Origin: Takakia lepidozioides
Lineage: Eukaryota > Plantae > Bryophyta
Direction: 5' to 3'
Length of the DNA: 64,000 bases
Assembly (NCBI GenBank): GCA_030704615.1
Contig: CM060731.1
Span: 21,018,001-21,082,000 of the forward strand
Shown: positions 1 through 45,964 of the stretch, in pieces
How positions within the stretch are numbered: position 1 is the stretch's first letter
Layout: the number at the start of each line of letters is the position of its first letter
Translations under genes and position numbers: made by a program
Notes under the pieces: model-generated
Database searches by the model: none
The model's input: the letters and a program-made list of their open reading frames with translations, nothing else
Told to the model about the DNA's origin: nothing

Positions 1-2213
1 CGTAAAGTCTGGAAGCCCGTCATATGTTAATTTGGAGAATGCCCTTGTCGACATGTATGCCAAATGCGGGAGCATCAAGGATGCGCATCAAGTGTTTGAA
101 AGCATGCCCCAAAGAAATGTGGTCTCATGGAATGCCATGATAATAGGATATGCTCAGCATAGGTGTGGTAGGGAGGCTTTTGAAATCTTTCAGCAAATGC
201 AATGCACAGGGTTGATGCCCAATAGGGTCACATTCATTGCATGCTCAATGCGTGTGCCAGATCCCTAGAAAAGGCCAAACAGGTACATGCAGACATGATC
301 GAAGCTGGAATTGTGTCATCTATCATTCTAGAGACTGCCCTTGCTGACATGTATGTCAAATGTGGGAGCATGAAACATGCACAGCAAGTGTTTGACAAAA
401 TGGCTCAACAAGGTGTGGTCTCATGGAATGCCATGATCGGAGGATATGCTCAGCATGGGTGTGGTAGGGAGGCTCTTGAGATGTATCAGCAAATGCAGCA
501 GCAAGGGGTGAGGCCAGACAGGGTCACATTCATTTGCACTGTCAAGGCATGTGCCAGCCTAGGAGCCCTGGAAAAGGGAAAGCAAGTCCATTGTGATATC
601 ATCAAAGCTGGAATTCTATCATATATCAATTTGGAGAATGCCCTGGTTGACATGTATGCCAAATGTGGGAGCATGAAGGATGCACGCCAAGTATTCGACA
701 ATATGGCTCAACGAGATGTGGTCGCATGGAACACTATTATTACTGGATATGTTCAGCATCTGTGTGGTAAAGAGGCTTTGGAGGTCTATGAGCAAATGCA
801 GGTGAAAGGGGTTAGGCCTGACAATGTGACTTTCATTTGCATTCTCAATGCATGTGCCAGCCTCAGAGCCCTCAAAAAGGGCCAACAGGTACATGCTGAC
901 GTCATTAAATCCCAAATTAGGCTGGATATCATATTGGAGACTGCACTTGCTGACATGTATGCCAAATGTGGGAGCATGAAGGATGCACGTCAAGTGTTTG
1001 ACAATATAGTGAAACCAAATGTGATCTCGTGGAGTGTGATGATCACAGGATATGCTCAGCATGGGTTTGGAAGGGAAGCTCTTGAGATCTATGAGCAAAT
1101 GCAACGGGAAGGGATCACGCCTGACAGGGTTGCATTCGTTTCTGTTCTCAATGCGTGTGCCAGCCTGGGGGCCCTGAAAAAAGGCAAACAGGTCCATGCA
1201 GACCTCCTCAAAGCTGGAATTGCACCTGATATCATCTTGGAAACTGCCCTTGCTGACATGTATGCCAAATGTGGTAGTGTAACAGATGCATGTCACGTGT
1301 TCAACAAGATGGCACAGCAAGATGTGATTTCATGGAATGCTATGATTGCAGGATATGGTCAGCATGGGTGGGGTAGGCAGGCCCTGCAACTATTTGAAAA
1401 AATGCAACAGGAAGGCTTGAAGCCAAACAGTATCACCTTTATATCTGTTCTCTCTGCATGTAGCCATGTGGGCCTACTGAACGAAGGCTGTCACTACTTT
1501 GTTTCCATGAGTCAAGATCATAGTCTCACTCCTACAGTGGAGCATTTTGGGTGCATGGTCGACCTTCTTGGCCGTGCAGGCACATGACTTAATTAACAGA
1601 ATGCCAATTGAAGCAGGTGCACCAGTGTGGGGGGCCTTGCTTAGCGCCTGCAGAATTCATGGTGCTATGGAGCTAGCAGAATGTGCAGCAAAACATCTTC
1701 TTCAGTTGGATCCACAGCATGCTGCAAACTATGTGCTGCTATCAAACATCTATTCTGCATCTGACCGGTGGGATGAACAAGCTAAGGTGAGAAAAATGAT
1801 GGAGGACAGAGGGGTCAGAAATGAGCCAGGTTGCAGCTGGGTCAAGGTCGACAACCAGGTGCATACTTTCCTGGTAGACGACAAATTGCATCCACAAATT
1901 GAGGAAATCCATGCTGAGCTGCAGAGGTTATCTAACCGGATGACAGAGGCTGGATATGTGCCTGACAAATGCTTTGTGTGGAGGAGGAACAAAAGGACTT
2001 TCCTCTTTGCTACCATAGTGAAAAGCTGGCCATTGCATTTGGGCTCATCAGCACACGCCCCCTGGGACACCTATCCGAGTTGCGAAGAACCTTCGGGTGT
2101 GTCCCGATTGCCACACAGCCACAAAGTTCATCTCAACGATTGCTGGGCGAGCAATTGTTTAACACAATGCTAACCACTTTCATCACTTCCAAGACTGGAT
2201 TTGTGAAAGGTCA
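1..2213 (+). pseudogene. PLS-class PPR-E-DYW RNA editing factor pseudogene (5' end outside window)
   Basis: Repeated S-P-L motifs (MYAKCGS..DA..VF; SWNAMI.GYAQHG; TFICILNACASL), then P2-L2-S2, E1/E2, PGCSWVKV and [11 protein letters not shown]. It is split over ORFs 32-268, 241-1587, 1547-2173 and 1969-2226. Relative to the intact paralog there is a 1-nt loss near 238, a ~14-nt deletion near 1583, a ~10-nt deletion near 1978 and a shift near 2060. The C-terminus reads FHHFQDWICERS* instead of FHHFEDGVCSCGDYW*. Confidence 0.9.
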
Positions 2214-3356
2214 TAATTTGTCATAACACGTGGAAGCCAAGAGTGAAGTCCACAAAAAGAGTTGAACGCAATGGTGAGTTCTTCACTTTCAGTAAGCTGA
2301 CAGATCGCAAGTAATAGTGGCCAGTGTGAGAAAAACGCTGAAGTGTTGAAGATGGTGATCCCTAAAAGATGGAGGAAGACAGGGCACGGCGATGGTGATT
2401 TTCTTTGTAGTGAATGGGGCACATCCAACATCGATGACATGGGAGCTATACTTGCCATGGGAGCTGCGTTCCAAATGGACATTCTGCAGTCATAAGAAGA
2501 CTGGCTGTTACTATGACAGTAAGAACAATGATTACCTTGTGATCCTCCAAAAAACACAGAATGTTGCAGGCACCGACAGTCAAAGTAGATCACATAATAT
2601 TGGGAAGTTACAAGTATTTCTATGGGAGTCACGTAGCAAAAGCAGTTGTTGGGGGTAAACTCTTAGAATGAAGGGATTAGCCTTTTCCAGGCAAAAGCAA
2701 ACAAACGGGATGTGTCAACTGGAGAGATGAGGATTGCAAGGATGAGACAGACGGAGTCTCGGGTATGGGGCATTCCACAGTTCCGATTTACAGCAAAGAA
2801 CCTTCTAAGAAATTCAATTCCTAGGAATGCAAAATTGGTTATCAAAGGCACAAGGGAGGGGTGACAAGAGATCACTGCACTGATACCATTTCTCCCCAAC
2901 AATTATTTGGAATCCCTCCCCTGGATAGGGGTGTCTTTTAGTTCCCCCCCCACCTTTTTCCCCTGCTACTGAGGATGATTCTCTCTTATGCAGGGAAGTC
3001 AGGAGTCCCTAAAGTAGTCATACACTTGAAGATTTCACCACAAGGGATGTACACTACAAAGGACCAATGGTAAGTGTGCTTGTCACAGGTCCAGTTCAGA
3101 GCCTCAACAAAAGGCTACCAACTATGACTACAAAATTCAGTCTCAAAAGTAAAGATGAGCTACAAGCATGCAACAGATATGACATGCATTTGATGATTTC
3201 ACCCAAAACTCTGAAGCAAACCTGTGCAGGTGTTTACCATGGTTGTGTTTGCATGTATACACGTGTAGAGTTATGGGACGTGAGAACCAAGAGATTATCT
3301 GCAAGGGTTCATCAACAAACACTGCGTCCTAAGAAATTGAATTCAGCTAACTTCTG

Positions 3357-5437
3357 TCAGCCTTGATTCTGAAGAGACTTCAAAACTCCTGCAATCGTGG
3401 ACCAATTGAACCCCCGACGCTGCAGCCATCCTATCATTCGCCGCTTTCGCGCATCATCGGATATACTACCCCCGCGGCCCCACTGCCGACTAGCCTGCAC
3501 CAGGAGATGTTCGCTTGCCTCCTTAGTCATACCCCATTGACGTTCCTCTTCTTCATCCTCAGCAGTGATTTCCTCACTGCTCTCAAACACCTGGTGAAGA
3601 GCTTTCTGGATGTCATCCTGGCTCACACCTCGTCTTTGGAGCTCCTGCTTCCCAGACCCCACTACAATCAGATGACAACTCATGACCGCCGTCAACTGTC
3701 TCTCTTGCTTTGAGCATGCTGCCCCTTTCTCCCTGAAATGCTCTCACAAGTGATGTCAATACCAGTTTTCAATAAACACTTAAACCCTACTACCTGTCCT
3801 TCTCAGCTGTGCGACAGTGCTATGGAATTCTGCACACTGTGGGCATAAAATCTACATTATGCCTGGAGGCTTACTATCAATCAGGTACATCTTTCATGAA
3901 TTTACATGGATTTTGTTCAAAAGCAAGTCATTGCCTGTTTGAGACGCTGAGGCCCCCAGCTTGCTGCACGCCATCTGGAACGTGCAAATACAGCTGCATA
4001 CTCTAAATCACTCTGCAACCCACTGCCACAACCACCCAACCATTCTTTCAATTGCTCTCCATTTGTGAGACCCACAAAGCTTGTTAGCTCGTCATTCCCT
4101 TACACATACTACAAAACTTCTAAAACACCCAAAGCATGCGACTAGATGAAAAGAGCTTAAAAGCTCAGCGAACAAAAATTGGTTTCTTCTCCCCTTCACG
4201 GGCTGGCTTCTTCTTGGCAGGCCTTCACGAAGCAGTGAATTAAGTGGGAAGCCAAAAAAATCTTTATTTTCGGAGCGCATGTTTTGCAAGCATGAAGCTG
4301 TCGTATAATTTGATTTGACGTATGACTAAACCTCTTTTTGCAAAAAGCCACTCCACGAAATGAAAGTCTCATCTTGTGTGTTGGCTGGAGTAACAATAGA
4401 GGACTGAGAGCACCACTGTGCGCTATGCACCTGGATCTGAAGTTCTTAACAACAAGTACTACCTGCAAGACATAGCAACTATCCTCATGAAGAAGTGGGG
4501 ATTTAGAGAGTGTCACCATCTTTGAAGGTCAGCTAAGGTAGATTCAATGACATCTGGGGAACTGTTCCTTTCAGAGAGCTTCAGTCTCAGTTTGGCAGCT
4601 GTACGTGGCCTGCCATCATCAGCCATACCAATAACCTAAATAAGCCACTTCCACGAACATTTGCCCAGCTCAAATGTAGATTCCAAAAACCAGGACAACC
4701 AGTGGCAGCATATTCAGGCACCCAGCAGTATTGTACCCACTATACATAGAAATTTAACCATTTCCTCATGACAATAGGAGGGAGAGAGAAAGAAACTGAG
4801 TCATCATTACGATCAAAAGGGCTTACGCAATTGCCAGCAGTCGAAGAGCATAGTTCTTTGCAGCAGCTATTTCTTTCTGGTTGACAGAGTCTCCCTCTTT
4901 CAAACCCTTTGTCTCTTTGATTAACTCTCCTGGCGTCTCATATGGATCACTTGCATCATCTGTCATATCTCCGTTTAGACCCTCAAACTGACGTCCGTCC
5001 CCGTAAAAAATTATTGGGGCCACAGATTTGCACCCTGCAATGTGCATCCAGGCATCCTCTGCTTGCACCTTGTGGTTTCTGCTTGTGTCTTCTGCTTTTA
5101 GCAACTCGGTATGTGCAGAGTTCTGTTCTGCTTTCATCACTTCTTGCCCCTCCCGCCAAAAATCTACATCTCTGTCCACCATCTCCCTCTTCTGCCCAGA
5201 GGTCTCTTTCTCTTTTGTGGCCACCCCTTTCTCTTTTGACCTCCCCCATCGCTGTCTTTTTGGAGGATACTGATGTGGTTGTGATTGGCTGGTTTCTGAA
5301 CTTTTCCAAATCCCCTTCTCGGAAGCCTCGTTTGACAAAGCCCTTGAAGTAGGTGTAGGGTTGTAACGAACAGGACCCAACTCCCCTTCAATGGACTTGC
5401 TGTACACAGTGAACGCTCCCCCAACTCTGCGCACCAT
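3357..5437 (-). CDS. RECX: RecX-family regulatory protein (plant organellar type)
   Basis: Exons 5437-4827, 4609-4517, 4022-3935 and 3644-3357 join in phase to give AKNYALRLLAIA-PRTAAKLRLKLSERN..VIESTLADLQRC-GLQSDLEYAAVFARSRWRAASWGPQRLKQ-ELQRRGVSQDDI...KRRMIGWLQRRGFNW, the three-helix repeats of RecX. The third intron has a GC donor. The start codon is uncertain and an upstream exon is possible. Confidence 0.85.
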
Positions 5438-6769
5438 GGCTTCAACACACGTTGTCCTAGTCAGATCGCAGAATCCCACCTTTTATCTTTGGAAAAAATA
5501 CAGAACCATTGCTTGTCTAGCATTATTGGAAGGCCAGCGGCCCAAACCACTCAGCCTGATGGGAATCATCATAGCGAAAATTCGCGTACAAGCTACCGTT
5601 TGGGCTCTCCCATCAAGACAAGGATTGTGTAATCTTTCTAGTTAAGACACCGATTCCTGACGATTTGCAGATCTAAAGCAGCCAATTGTTTTTCGATACC
5701 ATCTCCTCCAGCTGCTATTTCTCTACCTCGAAATGCTTCGAATCCACGTGGGGAAAAGGAACGGGCGAAAATTTTGATCCTCGAGTCGTTGGGCACACCC
5801 AAGCACTTTTTGAAATGAGAAAATAGATCGCAACGATCACGGGCTTTTCAAATCAAGTCACAATTCAGGAAGTGCCTACTAGATAAACACTGAAAAATAA
5901 AACCATCCACAGAGAAGGAAAGTGACGGCACTCAAGAAACTTACGAGAGGACACCAACAGCCTGTGTGCATCCATCATCTTCCGCAACAATAATCCATCA
6001 ACCATCCTCCACACGGTGAGCGACCTTGACTACACTGCATTGCCAAGTGGGCTCGTTCAAACCGCAACCACCGAGCACTCTAAGCCTGAAATGCAGGCCC
6101 CCTGATTCTTTCCGAATTCCAAGAAGACCATGAACTACTGGTAAGTTAGGGATTCATCGTTTGTCATTGTACGAAGCCTTTTGAATGTAAACCCTTATAT
6201 GCCTCCATAGCCAAGGAAGGCTATCACGGAGACCCAAAAACTCTACCTCCCATGGACGACTTCCAAGAAAAGGTGTCTAGTGTCTACCGTGCAACCAGAT
6301 ACCACAAGATACCACTTACCGAATCGGCAGAAGTGTTTCTCTCTTGTACATTGGGCCTTTTCTATTGGAAAGCGTAGGTAGGTACAGGGCAGTGTAGAAG
6401 AGGTGTAGAAGACACTTCAGTACGTGGCAAAAGTTGCGTCTCTCACGCAGATCTTCTCAAAGAAAAGGAAGAGTCCGAAAGAGAAAAAGGTCGTGCACAC
6501 AACTTAAACGGAGGCTTATGATGACAGGAGAGTCTTACATCTCACCCTTATGCAGAATGCAGTTGTGGATTGCTGGGGACAGGTAAAAATGTGATGGAGG
6601 TCATCAACAACTGAACAAGCATAGCTTCAGCTTCTTGGCAGGGCTTAGCGACACAAGACCGTTTGCTCTTTCTTTGGACTTCCATTCTCGTTGTTCGTCA
6701 AGGCTTTGATGGGGTTCTCCGTGTACTTCGATAATAACAACAGTAGTTATATTTCTCATTGGCACAGGG

Positions 6770-9700
6770 ATGGTGGCGTCCTCCAGCGCTCTACTGAGCG
6801 GGCAGGTAAACGCCATGCCCAACGCGCTGTCTTTTTCTTGCTGTGAATGGGCGGCAGGCCTCAAATCACCCAGCAGATTCAAGGCTGAAGTTGTGGAGCA
6901 GAAATGGGCATCCACTTTGGCAATGCCCGACCCGAGTTCCTTGCACGTGATTGCTATGACGACTCCTCAGGCCTTAGGTAGTCCGAAGAAAGGTATTCAC
7001 ATGTAGCCCTTAGAGTGTTTGAACTTAAAGATTGTTTAACTCCAGCGGATTTACAGAGACTACTGAACGCAGGGCGAACAACGAGACAACGAGACATAGA
7101 GGTAAGCTTATTCCTTAATGAGCTAGATACCACAGATGCAACACGTTGCCGAGCCACTTGAATTGACCCTGAGGGATGTAGTCATTGACTGTTCCCTGCG
7201 ATTGGGAGCAATGTTGTACCCTTGAGGGCGTAATCCTCCCGGGAAATCAACCCTCCTGGAGCTGGTTTGGAATTCAATCCATCGGGGTGTTGTAAACTCA
7301 GCCTGCACTTGCTGACTCACAGCCAACACAATCCTATTACTGGGAATTGAGCATTGATGTAGGGGCTGCTATAGACACGCGAGGAAACACAATGTCCATT
7401 CCAGTAGTGCCACACTGGCCCAAGCTGACACAGGAGTCTCAAATGTATGTGATTGAACCAGCAGTCACACCTGACCTGCGAAGAGAGAGATATAGAGGTT
7501 AATTTTATGGAAAGCCCACCCTCAAAAGAGAGTAGTAACCCCCCCATATGAAGAGAGGCTAGTTGGAATGTCTACTATCACATCTTCTGTCATCTATCTC
7601 TCTTATGGAAAGCCTGGCTCGGTCAAGTCAGAGCTGCTAAGCAGTAGCACTCCTCAGTAGAGACTGGTTAGTAGCTGGCTAATTCTCATGTTCTCACAGT
7701 TCTTGCATGCAGCTCAAGCAATGAGCATAGAACAAATTTGGCAGAAGTTCTTCTCAGATCCTTCACAGTGGTGGGACAACAGGTCTGATAAGGTGAGTCT
7801 ATTTCATTTAGACATGAAAGAATTTACTCATCAGATGTTGTTTGCTGAAGCCTATGTAGCCCTGAAAAAGGGCAAGGAAGTCCATGCTGACATCATTAAA
7901 GCTGGAATTGCCTCATACATAAATTTGGTCTGTACATTACTGAAAATTTCATTGGACAAAAACCAGGAATGGCCTTTTACTTCTGGTGTCAGTAGGTTGT
8001 TCTTCCTTGTAGCAAGGCTTTGGTTAACCGGCTCAGCTGCAGACTTCTGGTTTTACAGAAAAGTCCAAGATCGCCAGACTTCACACATAAGCACACAAAG
8101 GAGGTCCTGTGGATTGAGGGTTGGTGGAACCCTTCTTGGGTGAAAGAAGAGCTAGCTGCTATGATACAAGGTGGAGCACAATCTGGTGATGGCATGAATG
8201 TCAATGTACACCATGGAGATGCAGGCCATAGATACAATGGGTATTGTTTCGATCTTGATTTAAGTTTCATCTCAAACAGACCAATTTGGTACAAGACATT
8301 GGAAAAGTAGATGAGAACCCTAGGTTTGTCAGCCATGCATACGGAGCAAGGAACCTATCTTCATGGAGACATCCCTAATTTGAAGAATTGCTGAGATGAA
8401 CATTGTGAGTTTCAGTGCAACGGCTTTAACTGGGAGTTTTGACTGATGCAGGAGGGTATTGTTAAGTCAGACACACTCGTCTGTTGGACATCAGACTGGT
8501 GGCAGAGTAAGCACCCCCACCGTCACCGCTGCTTTGGAAAGAGGACCAAGAGAGGGGGTCAACAAGAACTCTTCTGACAGAAGTGATATGAGGACACTAT
8601 GTAAGACAGGATGTCTGAAAGATGCACTGTACGTGTTAAACCAACAAGGCATTCGAGCAGACTCCCATGTGTATGTGTGTCTCTTGCAGGAGTGCATAAA
8701 GAAGAAAGACCTAGCAGGTGGAAGGCAGGTGCACTCCCACATGACACGAACTGGATGCAAGCCAAACATATTTCTACTCAACACTCTTGTGAATATGTAT
8801 GCCAAGTGTGGGAGCTTGGTGGATGCACATCAACTGTTTGCAAAAATGTCAGAACGAAATTTATTCACATGGACCATAATGATAGCAGGATATGCGAAGC
8901 ATGGGTGTGGTAAGGAGGCATTCGAGCTTTATGAGAAAATGCAACAGGAAGGTGTGATTCAAAACAAAGTGACGTTCATTTGCATTCTCAATGCGTGTGC
9001 CAGCCTAGGGGCCCTGGCAAAGGGAAAACAGGTCCATGCTGACATCATCAAAGTTGGTATTATGCCATTTGTTAGTTTGGAGAATACCCTTATTGACATG
9101 TATGCCAAATGCGGGAGCATGAAGGATGCGTGTCTGGTTTTCAAAACTATGGCTCAACGAAATGCCGTTTCATGGAATGCCATGATTGCAGGATATGCTC
9201 AGCATGGGTGTGGTAGGGATGCTTTTGAGATCTATCTGCAGATGCGACAGGAGGGAGTGTTACCCACCAAGGTCACATTCATCTGCATTCTAAATGCGTG
9301 TGTCTGCCTAGGAGCCCTGGAAAAGGGCAAAGAGGTCCATGCTGACATCATAAAAGCTGGCATTGTCTCTGATATCATTCTGGATACTTCTCTTGCTGAC
9401 ATGTATGCCAAATGTGGAAGCATGAAAGACGCTCGTCAAGTGTTCGACAGTATGACTCAACAAGATGTGGTCTCATGGAATGTCATGGTCGCAGGATATG
9501 CTCAAGATGGGTGTTGTAGAGAGGCTTTAATGGTGTATGAGCAAATGCATTGTGAAGGAACAAAGCCTGACAGAGTCACGTTCACTTCTGTGCTCAATGC
9601 ATGTGCTAGCCTAGGAGCCCTGCAAAAGGGAAGACAGGTCCATGCGGACATCGTTAAAGCTAGAATTGCATCGTATATTAATTTTGAGACTGCCCTGCTT

Positions 9701-10693
9701 GACATGTATGCAAAATGTGGGAGCATGAAGGATGCACGCCAGGTCTTCGACAATATGGCTCAACGAGATGTCATTGCATGGAGTGCAATGATAACAGGCT
9801 GTGCCCAGCATGGGTGTGGTAAGGAGGCCCTGCTACTGTTCGAACAAATGCAACAGGCAGGCTTGAAGCCAAACCCTATCACCTTTATCGCTGTTCTCTC
9901 TGCATGTAGCCATGTCGGCCTACTCGATGAAGGCCATCACTATTTTAGTTCCATGACTGAAGACTATGGCCTCAGGCCTACAGTGGAGCATTTCGGGTGC
10001 ATGGTGGACCTTCTTGGCCGTGCTGGACGGCTGGATGAGGCAGAGGACCTCATTAACAAAATTCCAATCGAACCTGGTGCTTTGATTTGGGGGGCCTTAC
10101 TTGGTGCCTGTAAAATTCATGGTGATGTGAAGGTAGCAGAACGTGCGGTAAAAGGCATTCTCAAGAGTGATCCACAACAGGCTGGAGCTTATGTGCTCCT
10201 ATCCAACATCTATGCTGCAGCTGGCAGGTGGGACGATAAAGCAAAGGTCAGAAAATTGATGGAGGAAAGGGGTGTTAGAAAGGAACCAGGGCACAGCTGC
10301 ATTGAGGTCAACAACCAGGTCCATACATTTATTGTAGCAGACAAGTTGCATCCACAAATTGACAAAATTCATGCTGAACTGGAGAGATTGTCTGCGCACA
10401 TGAAAGAGGCTGGGTATGTACCTGACACACACTTTGTCTTAAATGATATGGAGGAGGAGCAAAAGGAATATTCTCTTTGCCACCACAGTGAGAAGCTGGC
10501 CATTGCTTTTGGGCTCATCAGCACACCCCCTGGGACACCTATCCGCATCATCAAGAACCTTCGGGTGTGTGGTGACTGCCACCTCGCCACCAAATTTATC
10601 TCGAAGATTGTTGAGCGAGCAATTATTGTGCGCGATGCCAACCGCTTTCATCACTTTGAAGATGGGGTTTGTTCTTGTGGAGATTATTGGTGA
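6770..10693 (+). CDS. PLS-class PPR-E1-E2-DYW (PG-type) RNA editing factor with an N-terminal OSB-type PDF motif, ~908 aa
   Basis: Exons 6770-6992, 7713-7792, 8059-8240 and 8452-10693 have GT-AG introns of phase 1, 0 and 2, all matching (2727 nt). Order: Ser/Ala-rich N-terminus; QIWQKFFSDPSQWWDNRSDK|KSPRSPDFTHKHTKEVLWIEGWWNPSWVKEEL; ~15 PLS motifs; E1/E2; DYW domain with HSEKL, CGDC and terminal DYW. The PPR-DYW part (8459-10693) is certain; the 5' exons are predicted. Confidence 0.85.
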
Positions 10694-10945
10694 CACTAGT
10701 GACATCGATGAAAGAAAGTGGCCACTGCAGATGTGAGGGGGAACTTTTTGTCGCTTTCTCTGAGCTGCCCATGGTGATGATGACATGTGAAGTTGAAGAG
10801 CCGCAGTCAAAGGAGACCTTGTTGTGATTCGTCCAACCATCTTGCTAAGAATAATGGGCATGAAGAAAAGTTCGAGATGAAAAACTTTCACCTAAGAAAT
10901 TTGAACAAGGAGATCCCCCAAACATTGAGGAAGACTCGGTACAGA

Positions 10946-12372
10946 TTGTACTCATAAGACGTTATTTGCTGTAGCCTTGTGGCCATTGACCCCGCGCCCA
11001 GTTTGAGCGGGAACAAAAGGGACAAGAACCTACCTCTGTCAGGGGCTGACGTTGGTAGTAAGACTTACCTCCATATATAGAATTAATCCGGGTTTTCCAG
11101 ATATCCTCTAGAAATCCCTTCACACAGGCATCAATCTGCTGTGTGTGATTTGCCCAAAAACTAGGCCTCAGGAGGGCCTGGGCTTTTGGCTCAGCCTCGA
11201 GACTTTCAAAGTTGGTAAACAGGGGTACAGGCTCAATTCCCTTAATAGATTTGAAGAGAGCGTCTCTTTGGTGAGAGAACCCCGGACAGTGTATCAGAAA
11301 ATGAATACTGTCTTCAGATTGCCCACACAACGGGCAATTACACTCTCCCTTTCCTCTCTGCTTCTGTTTGCTGTTCAAAGGTAGGCTTCCTGCCCTGAGT
11401 TTTAAATTTCAGTCTAGTGCCGAGAGTGGGTAGACCCTTGAGGTCATCCAAGATGTCCTCCCCATGTCACAGACTGGAAACAAGTTCAGGGAAGTTTTCT
11501 GCCTAACTTCATTTTCATCAGACAATCTCATGGCAACAGACATGGCTGAGGACACTACAGCCCTCTAAGTCAGATTTATCCAGCAGGGTCAAGACTTGCG
11601 GATCCAGGTCCAGGTCCTTGAGGATCTCTTCTACTCTCTTCTGCCAGGACTTAGCCTGTTTGACAGGGCGGTCCTGTTTCCAAGATATAGAGTCGATTAA
11701 CTTAGGATATCTGGTGTTGGGCATATGTTGCAGCTGACCCCACCATCTGACCTTGAATTCATCTCGTCGGGAGCTTAAGGACGGAATGCCAAACTCACCC
11801 CGAACAGCCACATTGGCTGTTTTGGAGCATGCTGACATACACTCCTTAAGCACCCCCACTTGAATGGATTCTAGAGACTTAGCCTGGTTGGAGTTATCAA
11901 CCCATATAGCTGATCCGTACTCCAAGGCAGGTCTAATAACGTGACAAAGCATGGTTTTCTTAACCTCAGAGTTGACCCCTCTGCAGTGGAAAAATTAAGT
12001 GAGCCCCAGAGCTTTGCCCTTGCCAGTTTGAACAACTTTCCGGATATGTGCATCCCAATTACAATTGGAGGAGAACTCAACGCCCAGGTAAGTGTAGGAA
12101 GGGAGGACCGGGATCTCTTGGCTACCCCACTGCCACTTAAGATCACTTCCTCCCTCTCCTCTGTCGTTGAATGCTACCACTGCACATTTGCTGACATTAG
12201 CCTCTAGCCCCCAAAGATCAAAGTATCTCTTCGCGCAATCAATCAACTCCTGGAGATTGGTTGGTGTCTCCCCTATGCCTGCGAAGTCATCCGCAAACAT
12301 AAGGGCCGGTATGGTGGTATCACCCACCCTTAACCCAAATCCCTCACTTTCCACATCCTCGAGGAGTTGATT
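10946..12372 (-). mobile_element. 5'-truncated, degenerate non-LTR retrotransposon (RT C-terminal half plus CCHC finger; RTE/RTEX-like)
   Basis: ORF pieces IPALMFADDFAG..YFDLWGLEANVSKC..YTYLGVEF, VIRPALEYGSAIW and CPLCGQSEDSIHFLIHC, separated by frameshifts. Flanked by a perfect 13-bp direct repeat GACTCGGTACAGA at 10933-10945 and 12373-12385. Confidence 0.9.
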
Positions 12373-12469
12373 GACTCGGTACAGAGTGAGTTTCTTGGGA
12401 GTGACTAGGGAACATGCATGTTGACACTTACTCCTCCTACCTGGCAAGCTGGAGAGATAGTTTACCCTG

Positions 12470-13120
12470 GGCTTAGCACCTTTGCATGTCCTCTCCCCAC
12501 ATATAGCCATACAGGTTTTGTGGATGAAGGCCATCACTTCTCAGTGGTTCGAGATCATGGCCTCCCTCCTACAGTGGCGCATATTTGCCTGCATGGTGGA
12601 CCATCTTGGCTGCACAGGCCGTTTGACAGAGGACTTTGTCAACAAAATTAACTCGGTGTTTTGGTGTTGGTGGCCCTGCTTAGTGCTTGCAACATTCATG
12701 CCGATGTGGAGTAACAGAAATGTCGCAAATGCCTTCTCAAGTGGCATGCTACAAACTATGTGACATCTATGCAGCAGCTGGCAGCTGGGATGATGACTTG
12801 TAAAGGTGAGAAATAGAGCTGTTAGAAAGGAGCCAGGGTGTAGGTTGATAACTGCTCATGTAATCTGTCTCCTAGCAGATTCAATTGAGGATCCATGCGG
12901 AGGTGAGGAGATTCTCTAGTTGGATGAAAGAGGAGGGGTACGTGCCTGACACATGATATGCATGATGCAGAGGAGCAAAAGGAAGTTTCTCTATACCGCC
13001 ACGGGAGAAGCTGGCGATTTGCTCATCTGCATACCCCCTGGAATGGCGATGAGTGTCACTAAGAACCTTTGGGTGTGTGGTCACCGCCACACCTTCATTT
13101 CCCAGATTGTTCGGCGAGTT
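12470..13120 (+). pseudogene. Heavily decayed L2-S2-E-DYW relic of a third PPR-DYW copy
   Basis: Fragments YSHTGFVDEGHHF..DHGLPPTVAH, CMVDHLGCTGRL, ccagggtgt (PG box), GYVPDT, gagaagctggcg (EKLA) and PPGMAMSVTKNLWVCGHRH align with 9880-10620 and contain many indels. Confidence 0.8.
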
Positions 13121-14472
13121 GTATGGTGGTTTCTGGTGAACCAAACAAAATGCATCGCAGTGTGCTTCAGATGTGAATCACAAAAGGTCACAACTGTAAG
13201 CAAAATGTGAGTCCATTTGAGCCAGTGAAGAAGTTTCCCTGAACTCCATCGCAGATTCAGCAGATCTTATGCATGAGCTGTGCGTGAAAGGGGGTCTGGC
13301 AACAAAGCTTCCTGCCGGAAGGCAAGGGCATAATTCGGGAGCTACATGCACCGGAATATGACCTAGAAACAGCAACAGCACGTAAGACTTTAAACCTGGC
13401 CTTTTTCTTCCGTCGTTCTGTGCTGGCCTTGCCCTTTAGTGATCTTCTCTCTTCCTCTGCATACGTTCGCGTAGCTACGGGGTATGTTCCCCCTCTGTGA
13501 GCCCTTCACGGCCCCATGTGGTTATTTTTTCAACTCTTTTAATTTAGTTCAAGGGTTTTATCCCTTTTCGCGAGGGGGGAAAATATTTAAAAAGACGGCA
13601 GAAGAAAAAAAAGAAGAAAAAACATCCACCACTTCCCACCGCGCACAATAGAGTCTATATTCTCTACCTCTTGCACCAAGCAAGAATCCTACCACTAGAC
13701 CAAGTGCCCCAAGTGATTTGAAATGTATGTTATTCAAAAAACAATAGGAACAATGTAAGAACTTAATGCAGGTGTGCGATTTGATGGTAGAAAATACGTA
13801 GACCTTGATCCATTGCCCACGGCCGTTTAAAGGTGTTTATCTTCCAACCCCCTTCTCCCTTTCTCTCTCTTCTTTGCAATGTGGCCATAGACGGCAGTCT
13901 CATTTCAGCTGGAGGAGGGAAGAAATGCACTACTGAAAGGTAGAACCAAACCAACAGGCTCGGCAATGTAAGTTCGGAGTTTACTGTATTTGTTTTAGTG
14001 AAATATACTAGAATTAAGGTGGTGTTGCTTCCATATGAAAAACTACAAGTTGGCTACAGCTTTTCGGGGGTAGGTGTCCAGACTCACATGGCCCTGTGGA
14101 CGTTAGCTAGTTTGACACACAATTGCAAGTATGGCTCAAACAGGCTGTTGTCTCTTCCAAAGCTAGTTTAGAAACACCAACCCGATATTACAATGGTCTC
14201 CTGTGCATGAATGATAAGGTAGATGAACCTAATTCAAACCACTTTTAAAAATGGACCCCTAGATAAATACACAAAACCAACCACATGCAAAGCTAGAAAG
14301 GCTCATATCTTTACAAGTGGTCCAGCTTAGATCATGTGGGGGGCTACAATGGTAATTGCAGTCACCTCTTTTAGATCAAGGTCGATTATGATGACAGCAG
14401 CGAGTGGAAACCTTCATAATTACATGTGGTTCATATTTGAAATATTGCTGCGCAGTTGGAGTGAGGTATTAA

Positions 14473-22270: not shown

Positions 22271-23764
22271 GAAACCCAGAATATTTGAGATGGTTTTTGA
22301 AGTAGAGGGGTGTAAAAGTCTGCTGGCACAGTAGACTCAGGAATAATCCTGGAAGGAGAGTCTGTCCCTTGAGCATTGAGCACAAGCCTTGTGCTCGCCG
22401 CCTCATGGCGACAGAGAAAAATCTCGACCATCGGGCCACCTCCTCTGTCTAAAATGGCCGTGCCACGTCTGCGCCACGTAGGATGAACGTGTGTAAACGT
22501 GGTAACCCGAGCAGTCAAAAGAATGACTGGAAGTGCGGGCCCAGCAAAGCGCAGACAGCGATCGGGGGCGGTGCGGTGGAGGTCGGGGGGGTGGCCCGAT
22601 GTGGAGACGGGAGATAGCAGCGGCGGAAGCGCGGCGATCAAATCGATCGTAATGGTGAGGTCACGGGTGCGCAAGATCCGGTGTGAAGCCAGGAATGATT
22701 TCTGGTTTCCATGTGAAGCTCCGCCCTGCGATCTGGCCCACAAACTTGATTCGCCTGTCTTGTTTTGTCACTAGCACGCTAGATGTGTACGTCTGTCTCT
22801 TTGTCTTTCTCTGTCTAGTTTCTCGGAGGATAGGCGTAAAACCTGACGGGCAAAATGTTGATTATGTCTAACATACGTGGAGTAGTGGGAGCAAGGGGTT
22901 TTTAGTAGGTTTCCCGTTTACTTCTGATTCTGTTCCGAACCGGGAATGGTTGCACGAGGCCTGCTGTTGTGTAACTTATCTATGCTCGCTCTGTCTCTCT
23001 TTCTCTTCTCTTGGCGCGGGGTCTATGGCCAGAAGGCTAGGGCAAACAACGTCGTATGAGTACATTCTCTCTTTTCTGAGACCAAAGCGAGTTCTTCAAT
23101 TACGCTAGAAATCAGGTTTTGTTCATCTGTTTGTCCTGGTGTTGGATACTATCCTCCTTTGGTTTGGGCGTGTTCTCTATCAGGGGAGAAGTGTGTGAAG
23201 GAGCAAGACATCACTCTGCCTTTTGCATACATAGACAGTGGGATTGGCCTTTGGTTAAATACGGTATCCGACCTCCTCCCTACGTACTGGTAACACTATC
23301 TAAGGTCACAGCACAGTTGTATAGATTTTTTATAGATCAATTCTTGAATTTGGTTCGCATAACTGTGTTACGATGTTTCGGGCATGTCTGACTAGATATT
23401 GGAGAACAACGCATGTGTTTTCCATGTGTACATCAGTGGAGATCCTATGAGCTGGCATTGCTTCTTAGTGCGATGGCCCTCTACTCTTTTCCAATTCTGC
23501 AGATTGCCGTAGAGCGAAAAGAGAGAGTACATATGTGATACCGGAAAGCGAGACTCTCGTAAGTGCGAGGGTCTATGTGTAGCACTTGCATAGTCCATTA
23601 ACAGAAGGATAAAGCCATAGATAAACTGTTTGCAAGTTTTTTTTCTTGCTTATCGCTCATGCTCAGGGCCGTTAAGGATGCGCGCAGGAACTGATTGTTG
23701 CGAGGGCTTCGGTGCGGTGCACACACACACATGCAACCTAATCACTCGCTGCAGAGAGACTGAC

Positions 23765-24925
23765 ATGGATGAGAAAATCTGGAGTGCCCTGCCCCAAGCG
23801 TTAGTGGACCGGGTGCTGGCAAGGCTTCCTCTTCCACTCCTTTTCCAATGTCGCACTGTGTGTAAGAAATGGAACTCCATCATCTCTTCACGGACATTTC
23901 AAGGCATGTGTGCAACTGTCTCTTCAAAGGATATATACTTCCCCACGCTGTGTGTCCATGGCGACGGCAGGCTCTACTACGGGTACGATCCGGCAATGGC
24001 GAAATGGCACAAGATAAATTCTCTCGACTTTCTTCCTTCGAATGCAGACATCTTTGTGGCTGGAACAGGAGGCTTATTCTGTTTCAAAGACTATGAATGG
24101 GACTTGGATGTGTCAGATCGGTTGTTTGTTTGCAACCCCGTGACCAAGAGTTGGAAAGAGCTACCTCCGATTAATGGGGAGGATCCAGGGGATCCATGGT
24201 GGCTTTCCATAATCCATATAGTAGCAGCGGATGAGCACACTGACGGTTACCAGGTCATAGTTGTAGGAAATGATTGGTTCAATCAAATCGGGGATGGAAA
24301 GCCAGGGTTCAGAAGCACAAAGGTTTATAATTCCGTTTCAAATTCGTGGACTGTCACTGATAGCCTTCCTGACAGAATCAAACTTCTGGGTCGCGGAAAC
24401 ACACTATGCAATGGGTTGCTCTATTGCGTGGTTTTGGAAGAAGGATGGTGGTCCAAAATAGGGGTGATAGCATATGACATACGAAGCGGACAGTGGATTG
24501 ATACTGTGCATATCCTTCCTTTACCAGACCATGTGGGTGTGAAAGTGCCACAGCTAGTGGCATGTGGGGGCCATGTTTTCATGATAGTGGGACTGACAGG
24601 AGGACACAAGCCTGGCCAGATCCTTGAAAGGGTCCATATTTTCATGCTCAAACCTGCAGAGAACAGATTGATTGAGGTAACCCAAATGCCCAAGGAGCTT
24701 GTGGCTGCTATGAAAGTGAAAGCAGGGCCAGAGGGGTACACCAGCGCCGCCTTTGGGCATCGAATCTATGTGGCTTGTCAGAACAGGTTATTCGTGTTTG
24801 ACATCTTTTCACAGTCTTGGACTACCCAATCCTGCTATCACTCTCTTGCACATTGCACCCAACGCTTGACCAAGATGTACTCGTACCATCCGGTGGTATT
24901 TCAGCCCAGCCTAACTGCGCCCTGA
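23765..24925 (+). CDS. F-box protein with C-terminal kelch/FBA-like beta-propeller
   Basis: F-box MDEKIWSALPQALVDRVLARLPLPLLFQCRTVCKKWNSII, followed by GGLFCF..LFVCNPVTKSWKELPP and VYNSVSNSW repeats. Single open exon; an upstream exon is possible. Confidence 0.9.
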   Translation: MDEKIWSALPQALVDRVLARLPLPLLFQCRTVCKKWNSIISSRTFQGMCATVSSKDIYFPTLCVHGDGRLYYGYDPAMAKWHKINSLDFLPSNADIFVAGTGGLFCFKDYEWDLDVSDRLFVCNPVTKSWKELPPINGEDPGDPWWLSIIHIVAADEHTDGYQVIVVGNDWFNQIGDGKPGFRSTKVYNSVSNSWTVTDSLPDRIKLLGRGNTLCNGLLYCVVLEEGWWSKIGVIAYDIRSGQWIDTVHILPLPDHVGVKVPQLVACGGHVFMIVGLTGGHKPGQILERVHIFMLKPAENRLIEVTQMPKELVAAMKVKAGPEGYTSAAFGHRIYVACQNRLFVFDIFSQSWTTQSCYHSLAHCTQRLTKMYSYHPVVFQPSLTAP

Positions 24926-39723: not shown

Positions 39724-42700
39724 TTACCGTCTCATTTGAGACACTTTTGTTCCTTTCTCTTTATTCATGACAAGATGAGCTTCACTTTCGACACAGAGAG
39801 GTACCAGAGATCCCCTTGGACCTCTGCCTGCAAGCTGTCCCTCTTCTTCCTCTTTGCCACTTTCCAGTACAACGCAGAATTTCAGTGCACATGCTGCGAC
39901 TGGTGGCATTCTCTCAACCTGCAAAACTGTCGCTAGCCAGTGCAAATCCCCTGTCAAGTGGGTAGCCTCTTGCAAATCTAGATATCTAAACTGTGGTGGC
40001 AAATTTTCCACGCTATATTGCACCCAGAAATTCCCACTCTCAGGGGCATTGTGCACAACAATGTCGATGAGAAGTCCAAGTGGCAAGCCAGGGACAAACC
40101 CAATCGGTTGCTCGAAGTCAGAACCAGGTGCCTTCATGTCTGCCCAAGTCTCCCTCACCCTGTTGTTGACGACGCATTTGGAAGGCCAATATGATGCTGC
40201 AAGCTGGCGGGCTGCAACCCATAATGACAAAGAATAGCTGACCTTCCCATCTATCAACTGCTTTTTAACGCTTCCAAGGAAGGATGATACAGTTGGCTGT
40301 TCTTGTTTCTTGAAGAGTCCATCAGCTTCCAGACATATGACATTCAACTGAGCAAGGAACACTGATAGTCTATCAGGGGATAAACCTTCTACTGGCAAAG
40401 TTGCTATTCTCAGAACTAAGTCAAGGCCGTGAAACTCCATGAGCTGCAGATGTTGTTGCTGACTAAGGCCAGAAAAGCAAGCAAGCAACCGTTTCACCAC
40501 CAACTCCAGCTTGTGAGAGATGTCCAGTGGAGAATCAGCTCTTGTGCTTTTTACAATGTGGTCTTTAGCAGGAGTCAGATGTGCACGGAGCTGGGTTACC
40601 AATGTTAGACAATGTGCATACAATGCCGTAAACCTCAATACCGAACTAAGGTTCTGGCTTCGCCCTTGCAGCATCTTGAGGTCCCTCCTGCAGCCCCTGC
40701 TGGATTTGGCACTGCCTGGTGTCAGAAAGTTGGCAACTAGGGGAAGAGAACAATGCAGCTCAACTCACAGAGTAACAGTACTTTATTGTGTCAAAAGCAA
40801 AACAGCAGGGACTTGGGAAGTTTACCTCAGGATTAATAATGCTTTTGTAAAGGCCTGCCTTGCCAACAAGGAATGTACCGAATGGGCTGTTTCCACAATG
40901 TGTTTGAGGAAGTCCAGGCCCTCTCTCTCGCCTGGTTTACACCACATATTCTGGTCCTCTCCTGCTAATGGAAGGGAGGGCTGTGAACAAACTAACCGCC
41001 TCTCCAAGCCTTGCGAAAATCTATTATTATCTTGCAAAACACTATCCTTGTTTGATGCATTAGAAGCAACCAGAAGCCAGCGGTTACGATTTCCCTCTTC
41101 CTTTGTAGAACCATTTGACAGAACCGTGACCTCCTGCCTTGCATCGCTGGTGAAGACAGTATCAACCTCAACCCTCAACTCTTGAGAAGTTGATTCCTTT
41201 CTATGGGACCACACAAACTGCATCGTTTCCAGACCCACAGGCCAGATATTAAGAAGAGGTAGGGTCTTGGGCAGTTTGTGGCGAATGACGCTCACATATG
41301 ACAGCAACTTGGGTGGGATGAGAGAGATACAGGTCGTATTTGAAATCCCTGCTGAAAGAACAAGCGCCAGCATTGCCGTACAACGGGGTTCGTCAAACCC
41401 GCTGTCACCAATTAAGACCGCTTGCACCTGCATACAAAACCAACCCAAGCAATGGATGAGCAAAACATACACAAACCTCCAAGCAGAAAACAATAATGTA
41501 GGGTACAGAAGTGGAGGGCAGACCTCTTGAAGAAGCTCATTTGCTATGCACTCTGTGTAAGTGGGATGGGCCTGACCCAAGCTGCTAAGTGCCTGTATCA
41601 CTCCCTCTTCATCCTGCAGCGAAGCACTATGCAAGATTTCAACATTTGAGCCACAAAATTAGCATTGTAACTCAAAACCTGGCCTATTTCAGAATCCAAG
41701 CTCAAGTACTTGTTGTCATCAGCAGTTGCAAAAAACCGGTTGACTTTGTACTGATATCTTCAACCAGTCGAATGAATGAATCAAGTCTAACAAGAGAAGG
41801 AAGTATGGCTCCTTTGACAGAGCTCCACCAAAACATATCCATAGAAATCAGACTACAACTTATGCTGTATTGAAAGAAAAGAGACAGAAAGACAGAGGGA
41901 CCTCAATGCACCTCAGAATGGTGCTCTAAGCTGGAGAGAAGAGCGCGGATGGTGGAATGGAAGGTAGCAAAGCTTGGCAGACGAATTGCTGCCAAAAGGT
42001 TGCGTCCAGACTGCCGCATTTCAGTAGTCGTGTCCTCCAACACGTCCAAAAACTGCAATACAAGTACAATCATTCATTGGTAGAGCCACAGACACCAGAG
42101 TAACTGACAATCAACATTTCAGATTTGTGACAAGATCTCTGGTGAACACTTCCATTTCAGCGTTCTAGAAAACTTCAAGGGAAGAATTCAAACTGAGCAA
42201 AAGAGGAAAAACATCCCCGACTGGCACCCATAACTATCCCATACACCTCAGACTGAAGGTTCGTATCAGGCGGGGTTCCATAGACACATACTGTTTGCTA
42301 TCGTAGCATGTACTGCAAGAACAATTGCTGTCAATTACTGCAGTCTCAATGTAGACTCAGCCTCTCAAGGTTCAGTGATAGTGTACCAATCTAACTGATC
42401 TTGCTGTAACTCGGCCTTACACTACAGAATAGACTCATCAAAAGGGAAGGCTTGTACTAGGTCAACCTGACAAGTGGTTAAGAACACATGTGGCCTGGTT
42501 AGTTTATGGGTCTCAAACGGGGTATCGTACAGCTCTTCACAGAATACCATCTTTAGTATGTACATGTCCATTACCATGTGGAGATGTTTGTCATGCACAG
42601 AGAGGTGACCTGCTACTGCCAGTTGCAAAAGTGCACTGACAGCTTGCATCCGGACAGGTCCTGCTTCATCATTGAGCATATCAAGCAAAAGATCCACTGC

Positions 42701-45700
42701 TCCATGCCCCATCTTCTCACAGTGGCAGCACAGCTTTGCCAAGGCCTCAATGGCCACTGTTCGCACCTGCATGTGGCAAGTCCACAGCTTGCATCAATTC
42801 ATTGAGGGCAGATCTACCGAAATCCTATCTTATTTTCACATAAACACAACCAAACTCTTGGAATTGGATTAGAATGGCCTGTTTTCGTTTAGAACCCAGA
42901 ACTAAGCAACAAACCTTACATGCAGTTTAGATGGACCGCAAAAGAAAGGGAGGAGGAAGAGGCGGAAAGAACACTACATTCTGACATGTGAGAGATTTCA
43001 ATGGTGCATATCACTTAGGGCAAACTCTTCAGAGGCAAGACCATAGATTCACAGACACAGCTTCGGCGGACAGGTTCATAGCAGACCTCAGAAAACTCGT
43101 CTTCAAGACCCTGCACAAAGGTCCCTGCTGCTCTTGCATCCAAAAGACTCGTTCCTTCCTCATACTTCGCCAAGTCCACATCACCCTCCGGAGTCATAAT
43201 GGACGTACTTGTGGGGGTTTCCTTCTCTTTTCTCACTGTGCCTAAGACCTTTTTACTCAACGTCTGGAGCAGCACACTCTCCCTAATATTCGTCATTTCG
43301 CCAAGTACACGAAAGGTCTCTTCTCTCACTCTCATGTTCATGTCAGTTACCTTCGTGCAGATCTGAACATTGAAACACACCCAAAAGCTTGTTAACTGAG
43401 GTCAGGGCTGTAGTGGCCACACAGATTTCTGTAGGGTACCATACCTTATGATTGAGATATATATGTCCTCACCTGTTCTCAAAAATTGGAGAAGCCTTTA
43501 AGGTGAAGAGAAGCCATAAATTACACTTACTTCAGCAGGAGCCCACCCTTCCCCCCCCCCCCCAAAGATTTGGTAAATTTCTCTAGATTCAGTCTCCAAA
43601 ACCCAAATTTTGGAGATTATGGCAAGGTTCCATTCACTCTCTCTCAATGCATAAGAGGGTATGGCAAAAAAATTCCAACCATATTGCATCTTTGTGCACC
43701 AAAGAATATGTGTAACATCTCAACCTAATATTTTCCAAATAAACACAATGCAAAATGCAAGAAATGCCTTACTGCCCACAGCCATCAATCCACGGTATAT
43801 GTGATGATGCCTATGGCACCCCCAAGGATGGTAATATCATTTCTTCATTCCAAGAGTGAAAGAAAGAATTTCAATGTACTACTGTAGGCTTCAAAATTAT
43901 GAGTTACTGATGCCTGGCAAGAGACATGCAAGTACCTGCAAGAACACTTCGTTGGCTTGCTTTGCTGGAGCCCCCTTTTCAACATCCTCTGCTAGTGTCT
44001 TTGCCCATGTCCCGACCTACCATGCACCCCACTGACAAAGCCTTAGCTACATAATGGCGATGAAAGCAACATCAAGCAACAACTTCACTGGTTTTTGATG
44101 TCATCACTGGTGTTCAGTTCCATTGCATCAGAAAAAGAAAAAAGAAAAAATTGCCCCCCCACATCCCCCCCTGGTTTTTGATGTCATCACTGGTGTTCGT
44201 TCCATTTGCATCAGGAAGGAAAAATAAAGAATTGCTCCCCCACGCCCCCCCCCCCTCCCCCCCTCTTCTCTCTCTCCTTGACACATGGTGCACACATGAG
44301 TTCCAACATCAATCTACACAATCAGACTGACTGGTAAACACAGTGACAAGTCTGCACAGAGCATCTACCAATGGAGGGGAAAACTAACCAGCTGGACTGC
44401 TGCAACCCGCACCGATTCAAAAAAATCTTGGAAAAGGCTGATTGCGTGCTCATAGCAGTCTTTGCTCAGCTCATATCCTTTGGCGTGCAATGTTATAAGA
44501 GCCCTTAAGGCAGCCTCTCTTACACATGGGTGCGGGTCCCCAGTGTATTCCAAAAGCGCATGCATTAAGTAATTCCCAGCAAAAGCATCAAGTTTCTTTG
44601 AATCCACCCCACTCCCCTCTGTAGCACCTGCACTGAAAAAGTGTTGAAGCCACCCCACTGTCTTGACAACCATGTCCTCAGACTGGTCGCTCATATTCAG
44701 GTCCTGGATGCCAGTGCCCCTCATTCCTTGCCTGCTGCTAATCTTTTGATACAAACTTCCTTTGGTTCTTTGCAGGGTTTGACTGACATGTGGAGAACAA
44801 GTTAGTGGCAGATCAATGGTGTTAAGCTCCCCCATGCACCTCCTTTTGCCACACCTAGAAACCTCTAGTTCCGCCTTTGCAACCTCATTTGGATCGTCCA
44901 CAACAGTTTGCTTGGGCTCTTTTGATGAACTATGTGAGAGGACTATCTCTCTCGCTCTTATACTCTCCACAAGCAAACGTATTACCAAGACCCGTACCTG
45001 TGGATTGCTGCTGCCCAGCAGTTTTTTCACTGGCCATCCGATTAAATTCCAGGTCACAACTCCGTCACATTTCTCAGCAATGGAAAGAAGGGATTGCAGT
45101 ATTTGAGCACGTACACCCAGTTTAACTAGGGGCCTAGCAGTGTCCTTGATTGAGAGGTATGTCTGCAGAGCCTGAACAATCGTTCTTGCAAATTCTGATC
45201 CATTTCTGGTCATTTCGAATCCATTTTCAGCAGTCTTGATTGGCAAAGACACGTCATGCTTGTCATTCAAATTGAACCCTGTGTGTGATACAAAAGCATC
45301 TGAAGCAGCACATGTTTTTCCTGGTGATCGTGACCAATGGCCAGCCTCCCCCTCCTCCCTCCCACAAAATACACATGGACCTCGGCCTCTGCATCGTGTT
45401 GTCCCCACAACTACAAAATATGTGAGCCAACAAGACGTCATCTTTAGGAAGTGCAGATTTGCAGTCATTGGATTCAAAAACTGCAAGAGAGGCCAGAAGA
45501 TTCACCAGCTTCTGCACTAACGACGGGTCGTCCTCCTTCCATAAGTGCATCTCGATAGAGTCCTTAAGAACTTTTCGGGTTTCACTTTTTGTCACGAGTC
45601 CTAAATGTGCGTCAATGCATACAATGGCATCCAGACGACCGTCCAACGCTGACTGGTTCATCAAGGATAACTTCTGTTTCAGAAAATCATCAAGAACATC

Positions 45701-45964
45701 TCCTCCGTCAGGATTCCTCGGCTGCTCCTCATGCAACATCACTTCTCTTTCATTTTCCCTGACCTTATGTTGTTCAATCTCCCAATCTGCAATGTCCGAT
45801 TGCGCGGGTTGAATCCACCTGCCCTTCTTCGTGAAGCTTCGGTTATTTGGCATCGCTTTAGCTTTAAAGTGCTTGCCCTCGAGAGCAACCAAGCCTCCAT
45901 CTCTTTCTTCAGCAGCATCATTTGCTAGTCCTTCTGATTCTCTCACCCGCTTCATTCTTGGCAT
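39724..45964 (-). CDS. SIEL: Integrator complex subunit 4 / SIEL-like HEAT-repeat protein
   Basis: Exons 45964-~45400, ~45300-44389, 44016-43936, 43362-43087, 42766-42575, 42052-41912, 41613-41524, 41427-40826 and 40696-39724; phases match from 44389 onward. Motifs DPHPCVREAALRAL, FQDFFESVRVAAVQL, DMNMRVREETFRVLG..LLQTLSKKVL, AAGTFVQGLEDEFSEVR and LLDMLNDE..VR are typical of INTS4/SIEL. The first junction is unresolved. Confidence 0.85.
44089..44250. repeat. ~83-bp tandem duplication in a SIEL intron
   Basis: ctggtttttgatgtcatcactggtgttc..ttccatt(t)gcatcag..attg..ccccc present twice. Confidence 0.8.

Follow-up and report, generated by a model that had tools for sequence, protein, structure and literature searches.

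An OSB-type PDF module in front of a PPR-DYW protein of Takakia lepidozioides, with relatives in other seed-free plants

Positions 6770-10693 of the forward strand of the stretch of DNA analyzed here (64,000 nt, referred to as the window) hold an intact, transcribed PPR-DYW gene with an OSB-type PDF module in front. This fusion is apparently an undescribed variant of the PPR-DYW editors; editing-factor fusions were surveyed across 364 genomes in 2026 with no mention of either OSB or PDF (PMC13386178), and our literature searches, whose coverage left most subscription journals outside, found no description of a PDF-PPR-DYW fusion. We give a probability of about 45% to the reading that the gene encodes an organellar, site-specific C-to-U RNA editor, whose OSB-derived PDF module would serve as an accessory grip on single-stranded DNA (ssDNA) near nascent transcripts.

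The coding sequence comprises four exons (6770-6992, 7713-7792, 8059-8240 and 8452-10693) totaling 2727 nt, or 908 codons and a stop. The introns between them (6993-7712, 7793-8058 and 8241-8451) are all of the GT-AG type and lie in phases 1, 0 and 2, while in-frame stops are absent from every exon. The preliminary description of this DNA had joined three upstream exons in phase to a 744-codon ORF (8459-10693) whose first codon is TTG, and the splice sites, phases and open frames bear this model out. Exon 1 (74 codons) begins with the first in-frame ATG after a stop and encodes a Ser/Ala-rich N-terminus that is, by its composition, a putative organelle transit peptide; this N-terminus is rich in Ser, Thr and Ala, yet has 4 acidic residues in 60, and no homologue of exon 1 was found among 269 fetched proteins. 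Upstream of it lies a transcribed 5' leader (6408-6769) with upstream ATGs and short uORFs, which abuts the 5' end of a divergent RecX-like transcript. Exon 2 encodes the N-terminal half of the PDF motif, from about 7727, and exon 3 its C-terminal half (8059-8157) together with the start of a linker. Exon 4 opens with the remainder of this polar linker, recognized by composition, and a pre-PPR helix (8452-8662). An in-frame ATG in exon 2, at 7721, could yield a form that begins at the PDF motif. Intron 2 contains an 80-nt PPR-derived fragment (7849-7928), 80-88% identical to PPR repeats in the window; retention of the intron would join this fragment in frame to exon 2 (ORF 7688-8143).

Two sequencing runs (X1 and X2) from two studies cover the locus; their status as RNA is the tool's guess, and X1 shows the neighboring gene in spliced form. 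Contigs from X1 that are 100% identical to the window span 6408-6805 and 6776-6992, the latter stopping exactly at the predicted donor at 6992, and near-identical contigs were also found at 9400-9728, 9804-10017 and 10666-10900. A contig from X2 (6780-7054) continues 62 nt into intron 1. Inside the same intron lies a 225-nt contig (7320-7544, 100% identical), for which an alternative exon, an alternative start or a repeat is possible. Up to 24 paralogous RNA contigs of the same species cover exon 3, and, with reads placed at 90% likeness, these deeper paralogues masked this copy's junctions at 7792/8059 and 8240/8452. Of the RNA check that the preliminary description had proposed for the junctions, the part at donor 6992 stands, as a contig ends there; the two later junctions, hidden by the paralogous contigs, are predicted, with the gene structure conserved in homologues as their support.

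We searched the spliced model exon by exon and used natural homologues for profiles and folds in place of the joined protein. Exon 4 has Pfam matches to PPR, E, E+ and DYW (DYW E = 2e-44), and domain matches and repeat lengths resolve it into 14 repeats of canonical length (8663-10078), E1 and E2 motifs (10079-10279) and a DYW cytidine deaminase of the PG type (10280-10693, stop at 10691-10693), with the overall layout (L1-S1-P1)x3-L1-S1-P2-L2-S2-E1-E2-DYW. The deaminase motifs are complete, with HSE (HxE) at 10484, CGDC (CxxC) at 10568 and the terminal DYW at 10682, so that the PLS array and intact zinc deaminase claimed from the letters alone were both recovered. A PG box, of the C-to-U rather than the KP type, is present; its usual Trp is replaced by Cys, a residue that occurs at this position in 0/98 homologues (Trp in 83/98, other residues in 15/98). 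An array of this kind recognizes about 14 nt of RNA at one base per repeat, and the C deaminated by the E1-E2-DYW part lies four bases beyond the last repeat. The footprint predicted for the window protein is about n-Y-A-n-Y-Y-n-G-U-n-G-A-n-n, followed by three bases and then the C. From N to C, PPR repeats run along RNA 5' to 3'; an N-terminal module therefore meets the footprint at its 5' end, with the deaminase at the other. Among known proteins, the repeat layout is identical to that of PpPPR_56 and PpPPR_71 (PMC9459714), and E1-E2, PG box, HxE..CxxC and terminal DYW are held in common with the PG-type PPR-DYW editors PpPPR_56, PpPPR_71 and PpPPR_45. Unlike those editors, the window protein has an N-terminal PDF motif on two exons, a longer linker and Cys for Trp in the PG box.

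The motif is split such that the last residue of exon 2 is the Lys after WWDNR, and the remainder begins exon 3. Against an OSB-only profile, built from 30 PDF motifs of ten OSB-type proteins, of which nine have a Pfam SSB match, exons 2 and 3 scored 29.2 and 40.9 bits, whereas the best of 2000 shuffles reached 9.9 and 13.5 bits, which rules out a chance origin. In the reverse direction, a profile of 16 motifs from natural PPR fusions retrieved 1223 representatives at E up to 0.001, and the matches sampled were named OSB2 or OSB3 or carried the Pfam SSB domain. The identification of an OSB-type PDF motif in the preliminary description was thus confirmed from both sides, and the window motif retains each invariant or nearly invariant column of a 93-sequence alignment. 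With Pfam, the PDF exons gave no match at all and an SSB match was absent from all exons; word searches with exon 3 alone or with the linker found nothing. We considered whether the gene might simply encode an OSB protein and rejected this, as there is no OB/SSB fold and just 79 residues lie ahead of the motif. With AtOSB1-4 the window protein shares the PDF sequence, the predicted fold (TM 0.92) and the internal phase-0 intron; it differs from them in lacking the OB/SSB fold and in having a single, N-terminal motif joined to a PPR array and deaminase, where the OSB motif is C-terminal. PPR fusions with RRM, MORF or RanBP2 zinc-finger domains (PMC13386178) likewise combine an editing factor with an accessory nucleic-acid-binding or helper domain.

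The motif shows constraint at the protein level. Compared with four other plants, its pN is 0.18-0.26 and its pS 0.66-0.72 (ratios of 0.11-0.18, which are rough with dS near saturation). Moss, liverwort and lycophyte fusions keep all invariant motif residues, with synonymous sites near saturation and diverged flanks. Folded alone, the module was modeled at pLDDT 96 as a helix, short strands and a helix. The model of the Ceratodon homologue places both module and repeats with confidence, in contrast to its linker, whose pLDDT stays under 50 across 46 residues; the linker of the window protein is longer, at roughly 70 polar residues. The module is accordingly modeled as a separate fold, predicted to be carried on a disordered, flexible linker. 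A shape search with the module returned OSB proteins and three PPR/DYW clusters (127, 63 and 57 members) at TM 0.90-0.92, while no fold match was found among solved structures in the PDB (best Z 2.6), a blank that does not prove a new fold.

The gene is a member of a wider family. Among the 120 best homologues of the PPR-DYW exon, 24 have one to three PDF motifs ahead of the repeats, comprising many proteins from Diphasiastrum complanatum, two from Calypogeia fissa and one from Ceratodon purpureus (KC19_1G285400). The fusion-motif profile adds proteins from Sphagnum (PDF-PPR-DYW) and Adiantum (PDF-PPR), and a 4.7-kb Logan contig from another plant carries three PDF motifs and PPRs in one unbroken frame. 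A separate PDF gene beside a PPR gene was rejected as an explanation, considering that the homologues are fused and the Logan contig is continuous in frame. The relatives in Diphasiastrum complanatum, Ceratodon purpureus, Sphagnum, Calypogeia fissa and Adiantum capillus-veneris share the architecture of the window protein and differ in having one to three modules and other repeat numbers, with a best PPR-DYW identity to the window of 57%. Similar unannotated proteins, suspected beforehand in seed-free plants and to be sought by profile co-occurrence, thus exist in moss, liverwort, clubmoss and fern. The chimera of OSB-type PDF motif, PLS array and deaminase stands as described; it is not a one-off, as it belongs to an old family. 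Databases label these relatives only as PPR or hypothetical protein, and annotation pipelines miss the module because Pfam gives no match and an intron splits the motif. Among the best homologues, the seed-plant rows (Ginkgo, Cryptomeria, pine and angiosperm) had the motif in 0/45 cases, in a sample biased to long proteins. The family is expanded in the Takakia genome, and Takakia lepidozioides has 2016 PPR genes (PMC13386178).

Gene structure ties the family together. The window gene has the family hallmark of an N-terminal PDF module with a phase-0 intron after WWDNRxxK, a phase-1 intron before it and a phase-2 intron after it. The fusions of Diphasiastrum and Ceratodon have phases 1, 0 and 2 at matching places, and those of Calypogeia have 1 and 0; phase 1 before the module also occurs in a fern OSB gene, and the OSB genes of Ceratopteris and Asparagus have the same phase-0 intron within each PDF motif, the position of intron 2 in the window. 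These intron positions support the splice model and, at the same time, an exon-shuffling origin. The phase-2 intron at the join is common to moss and lycophyte, which suggests one early PDF-PPR fusion event. In a tree of E-DYW sequences, the window DYW was placed, weakly (80), beside mosses, and the PDF label needs six changes on what is a quick tree only. These changes could be losses, recombination or missed exons; many of the labels without PDF rest on single-exon gene calls, and one moss locus proved to have the missing exons upstream. Degenerate copies of the module are present in Diphasiastrum.

One clade provides a natural contrast. The Ceratodon fusion groups with PPR_45 of Physcomitrium and Funaria in a fully supported clade, in which the PDF exons are found in Ceratodon and in a moss from ENA, but not in Physcomitrium; no PDF remnant was found within 5 kb upstream of the PpPPR_45 locus. 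PpPPR_45 edits plastid rps14-C2 (PMC9459714), and the module is therefore not required for editing in this clade and is probably dispensable.

Outside plants, a 205-residue protein is encoded on four near-identical IMG/VR contigs (2503-3120 of the contigs). Its C-terminus carries a PDF-like motif (38 bits, with E at about 1e-4 once scaled to 1.8 billion proteins) that lacks the final helix. The gene is flanked by a PD-(D/E)XK exonuclease on one side and by a DnaB helicase, a primase and RusA on the other. The Atlas neighbors of the protein include a 199-residue phage cluster of 54 members, which fits the description of a fold-search match at TM 0.76. The phage protein is a possible prokaryotic relative of the plant PDF motif, and its replication-module setting fits a DNA-binding role for the PDF module. 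PDF motifs have been stated to occur only in green plants (PMC4166229), a statement that the phage motif challenges. For the PDF motif, PHROGs returned single weak matches only, an INPHARED phage search no match and an Atlas feature search a blank. The single match in bacterial genomes, a 536-bp OSB-like contig in a MAG that encodes poly-Gln, a stretch resembling SSB and a PDF motif, is probably eukaryotic (algal) contamination.

In the reading that we favor, an OSB gene would have donated the PDF module through exon shuffling at an early stage of land-plant evolution. After organelle import, the module would bind single-stranded nucleic acid without sequence preference, and its likeliest ligand would be, as for OSB proteins, ssDNA in nucleoids, in transcription bubbles or in R-loops. 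Such a grip would keep the editor near nascent transcripts and thereby raise its local concentration; it would be an accessory at the 5' end of the RNA footprint, with neither target choice nor catalysis depending on it. That the protein is targeted to organelles and tethered to nucleoids or R-loops, as suggested earlier, is plausible. The OSB-only match of the exons, the modules among the best homologues, the shared introns, a pN well below pS, autonomous folding, the place of the phage gene between exonuclease and DnaB helicase and the repeat layout of PpPPR_56 and PpPPR_71 are all consistent with an ssDNA grip on an RNA editor, and AtOSB1 needs no more than its PDF motif to bind ssDNA (PMC6963530). 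However, AtOSB2 binds as a tetramer (PMC6963530) and the fusion has a single PDF copy, so that affinity may be low; the ssDNA preference was measured on OSB proteins rather than on fused modules, the PG box has Cys for Trp, and PpPPR_45 edits without the module. It is possible, if rather unlikely, that the PDF module of the same editor binds RNA instead, adding avidity or keeping the target unfolded as a built-in helper where MORFs are lacking. Being N-terminal, the module would lie next to the RNA that precedes the PPR footprint on the 5' side, and MORFs are found only in seed plants (PMC13386178), the group in which our length-biased sample had no module. Nevertheless, OSB proteins prefer ssDNA to RNA (PMC4166229), and moss DYW proteins need no partner to edit in E. 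coli (PMC6397227).

We consider it improbable that the module is a passenger, carried along when a PPR-DYW sequence landed behind an OSB-like promoter, transit peptide and PDF exons, in a cassette that spread by supplying expression and import. The six label changes, the activity of PpPPR_45 and the degenerate Diphasiastrum copies would agree with this, as would the documented expansion of PPR genes by dispersed duplication (PMC13386178), but a passenger should have decayed, and the invariant residues are kept despite near-saturated synonymous sites and diverged flanks. There is likewise little likelihood that the family is real and this copy is drifting, by skipping or retaining introns or through a weakened deaminase. 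Pointing that way are the X2 contig that runs into intron 1, the contig at 7320-7544, the several uORFs, the PPR debris in intron 2, the Cys in the PG box and the frameshifts of a neighboring PPR-DYW gene (241-2173); yet frames, splice sites and catalytic motifs are all intact here, near-identical contigs from two studies lie at both ends, and one contig stops exactly at donor 6992. Least probable is a sequence-specific cytidine deaminase acting on organelle ssDNA, which the preliminary description had allowed for. The module is of an ssDNA-binding type, and synthetic P-type PPRs read ssDNA with the same code (PMC12733224), but the canonical RNA-editor layout, shared with PpPPR_56 and PpPPR_71 (PMC9459714), the position of the module farthest from the active site and the relatives, which are RNA editors and include PpPPR_45 without a module, speak against action on ssDNA, and a large family of such enzymes would presumably be mutagenic.

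Beyond this gene, we tentatively propose that seed-free plants may have an old, unrecognized class of editors that dock on organelle nucleoid or R-loop ssDNA via the PDF module, with co-transcriptional editing and a module related to a domain of a phage DNA-replication protein; we see this as somewhat less likely to be right than wrong. With the fusion, a plant enzyme family that is among the best studied gains a conserved accessory domain that had gone unreported, and the fusion makes testable the open question of whether organellar editing is coupled to the nucleoid and transcription. The natural contrast among mosses (Ceratodon with the module, Physcomitrium PPR_45 without it) and the activity of moss-type DYW proteins in E. 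coli allow a simple deletion test, and a small, self-folding module could serve engineered PPR editors.

The surroundings of the gene contain further PPR-related and other sequences. Head to head with it lies a spliced RecX gene on the reverse strand (3360-6430; Pfam RecX_HTH1-3), and the RNA contigs of the two genes meet at 6408-6430, which suggests a shared bidirectional promoter. A second PPR-E-DYW gene (1-2173, forward strand), whose 5' end is beyond the window, has frameshifts near 1550-1590 and near the DYW. Directly after the PDF-PPR gene comes a decayed LINE-like reverse transcriptase (10962-12763, reverse strand; weak RVT_1 match), and a decayed DYW-like fragment, seen by eye and without a Pfam match, lies at 12881-13144 on the same strand. 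A further isolated PPR repeat fragment is found at 49379-49434. By eye, 23630-24925 and 39724-45964 on the reverse strand and 52563-53627 on the forward strand hold ordinary-looking plant genes (F-box/kelch-like and a HEAT-repeat gene).
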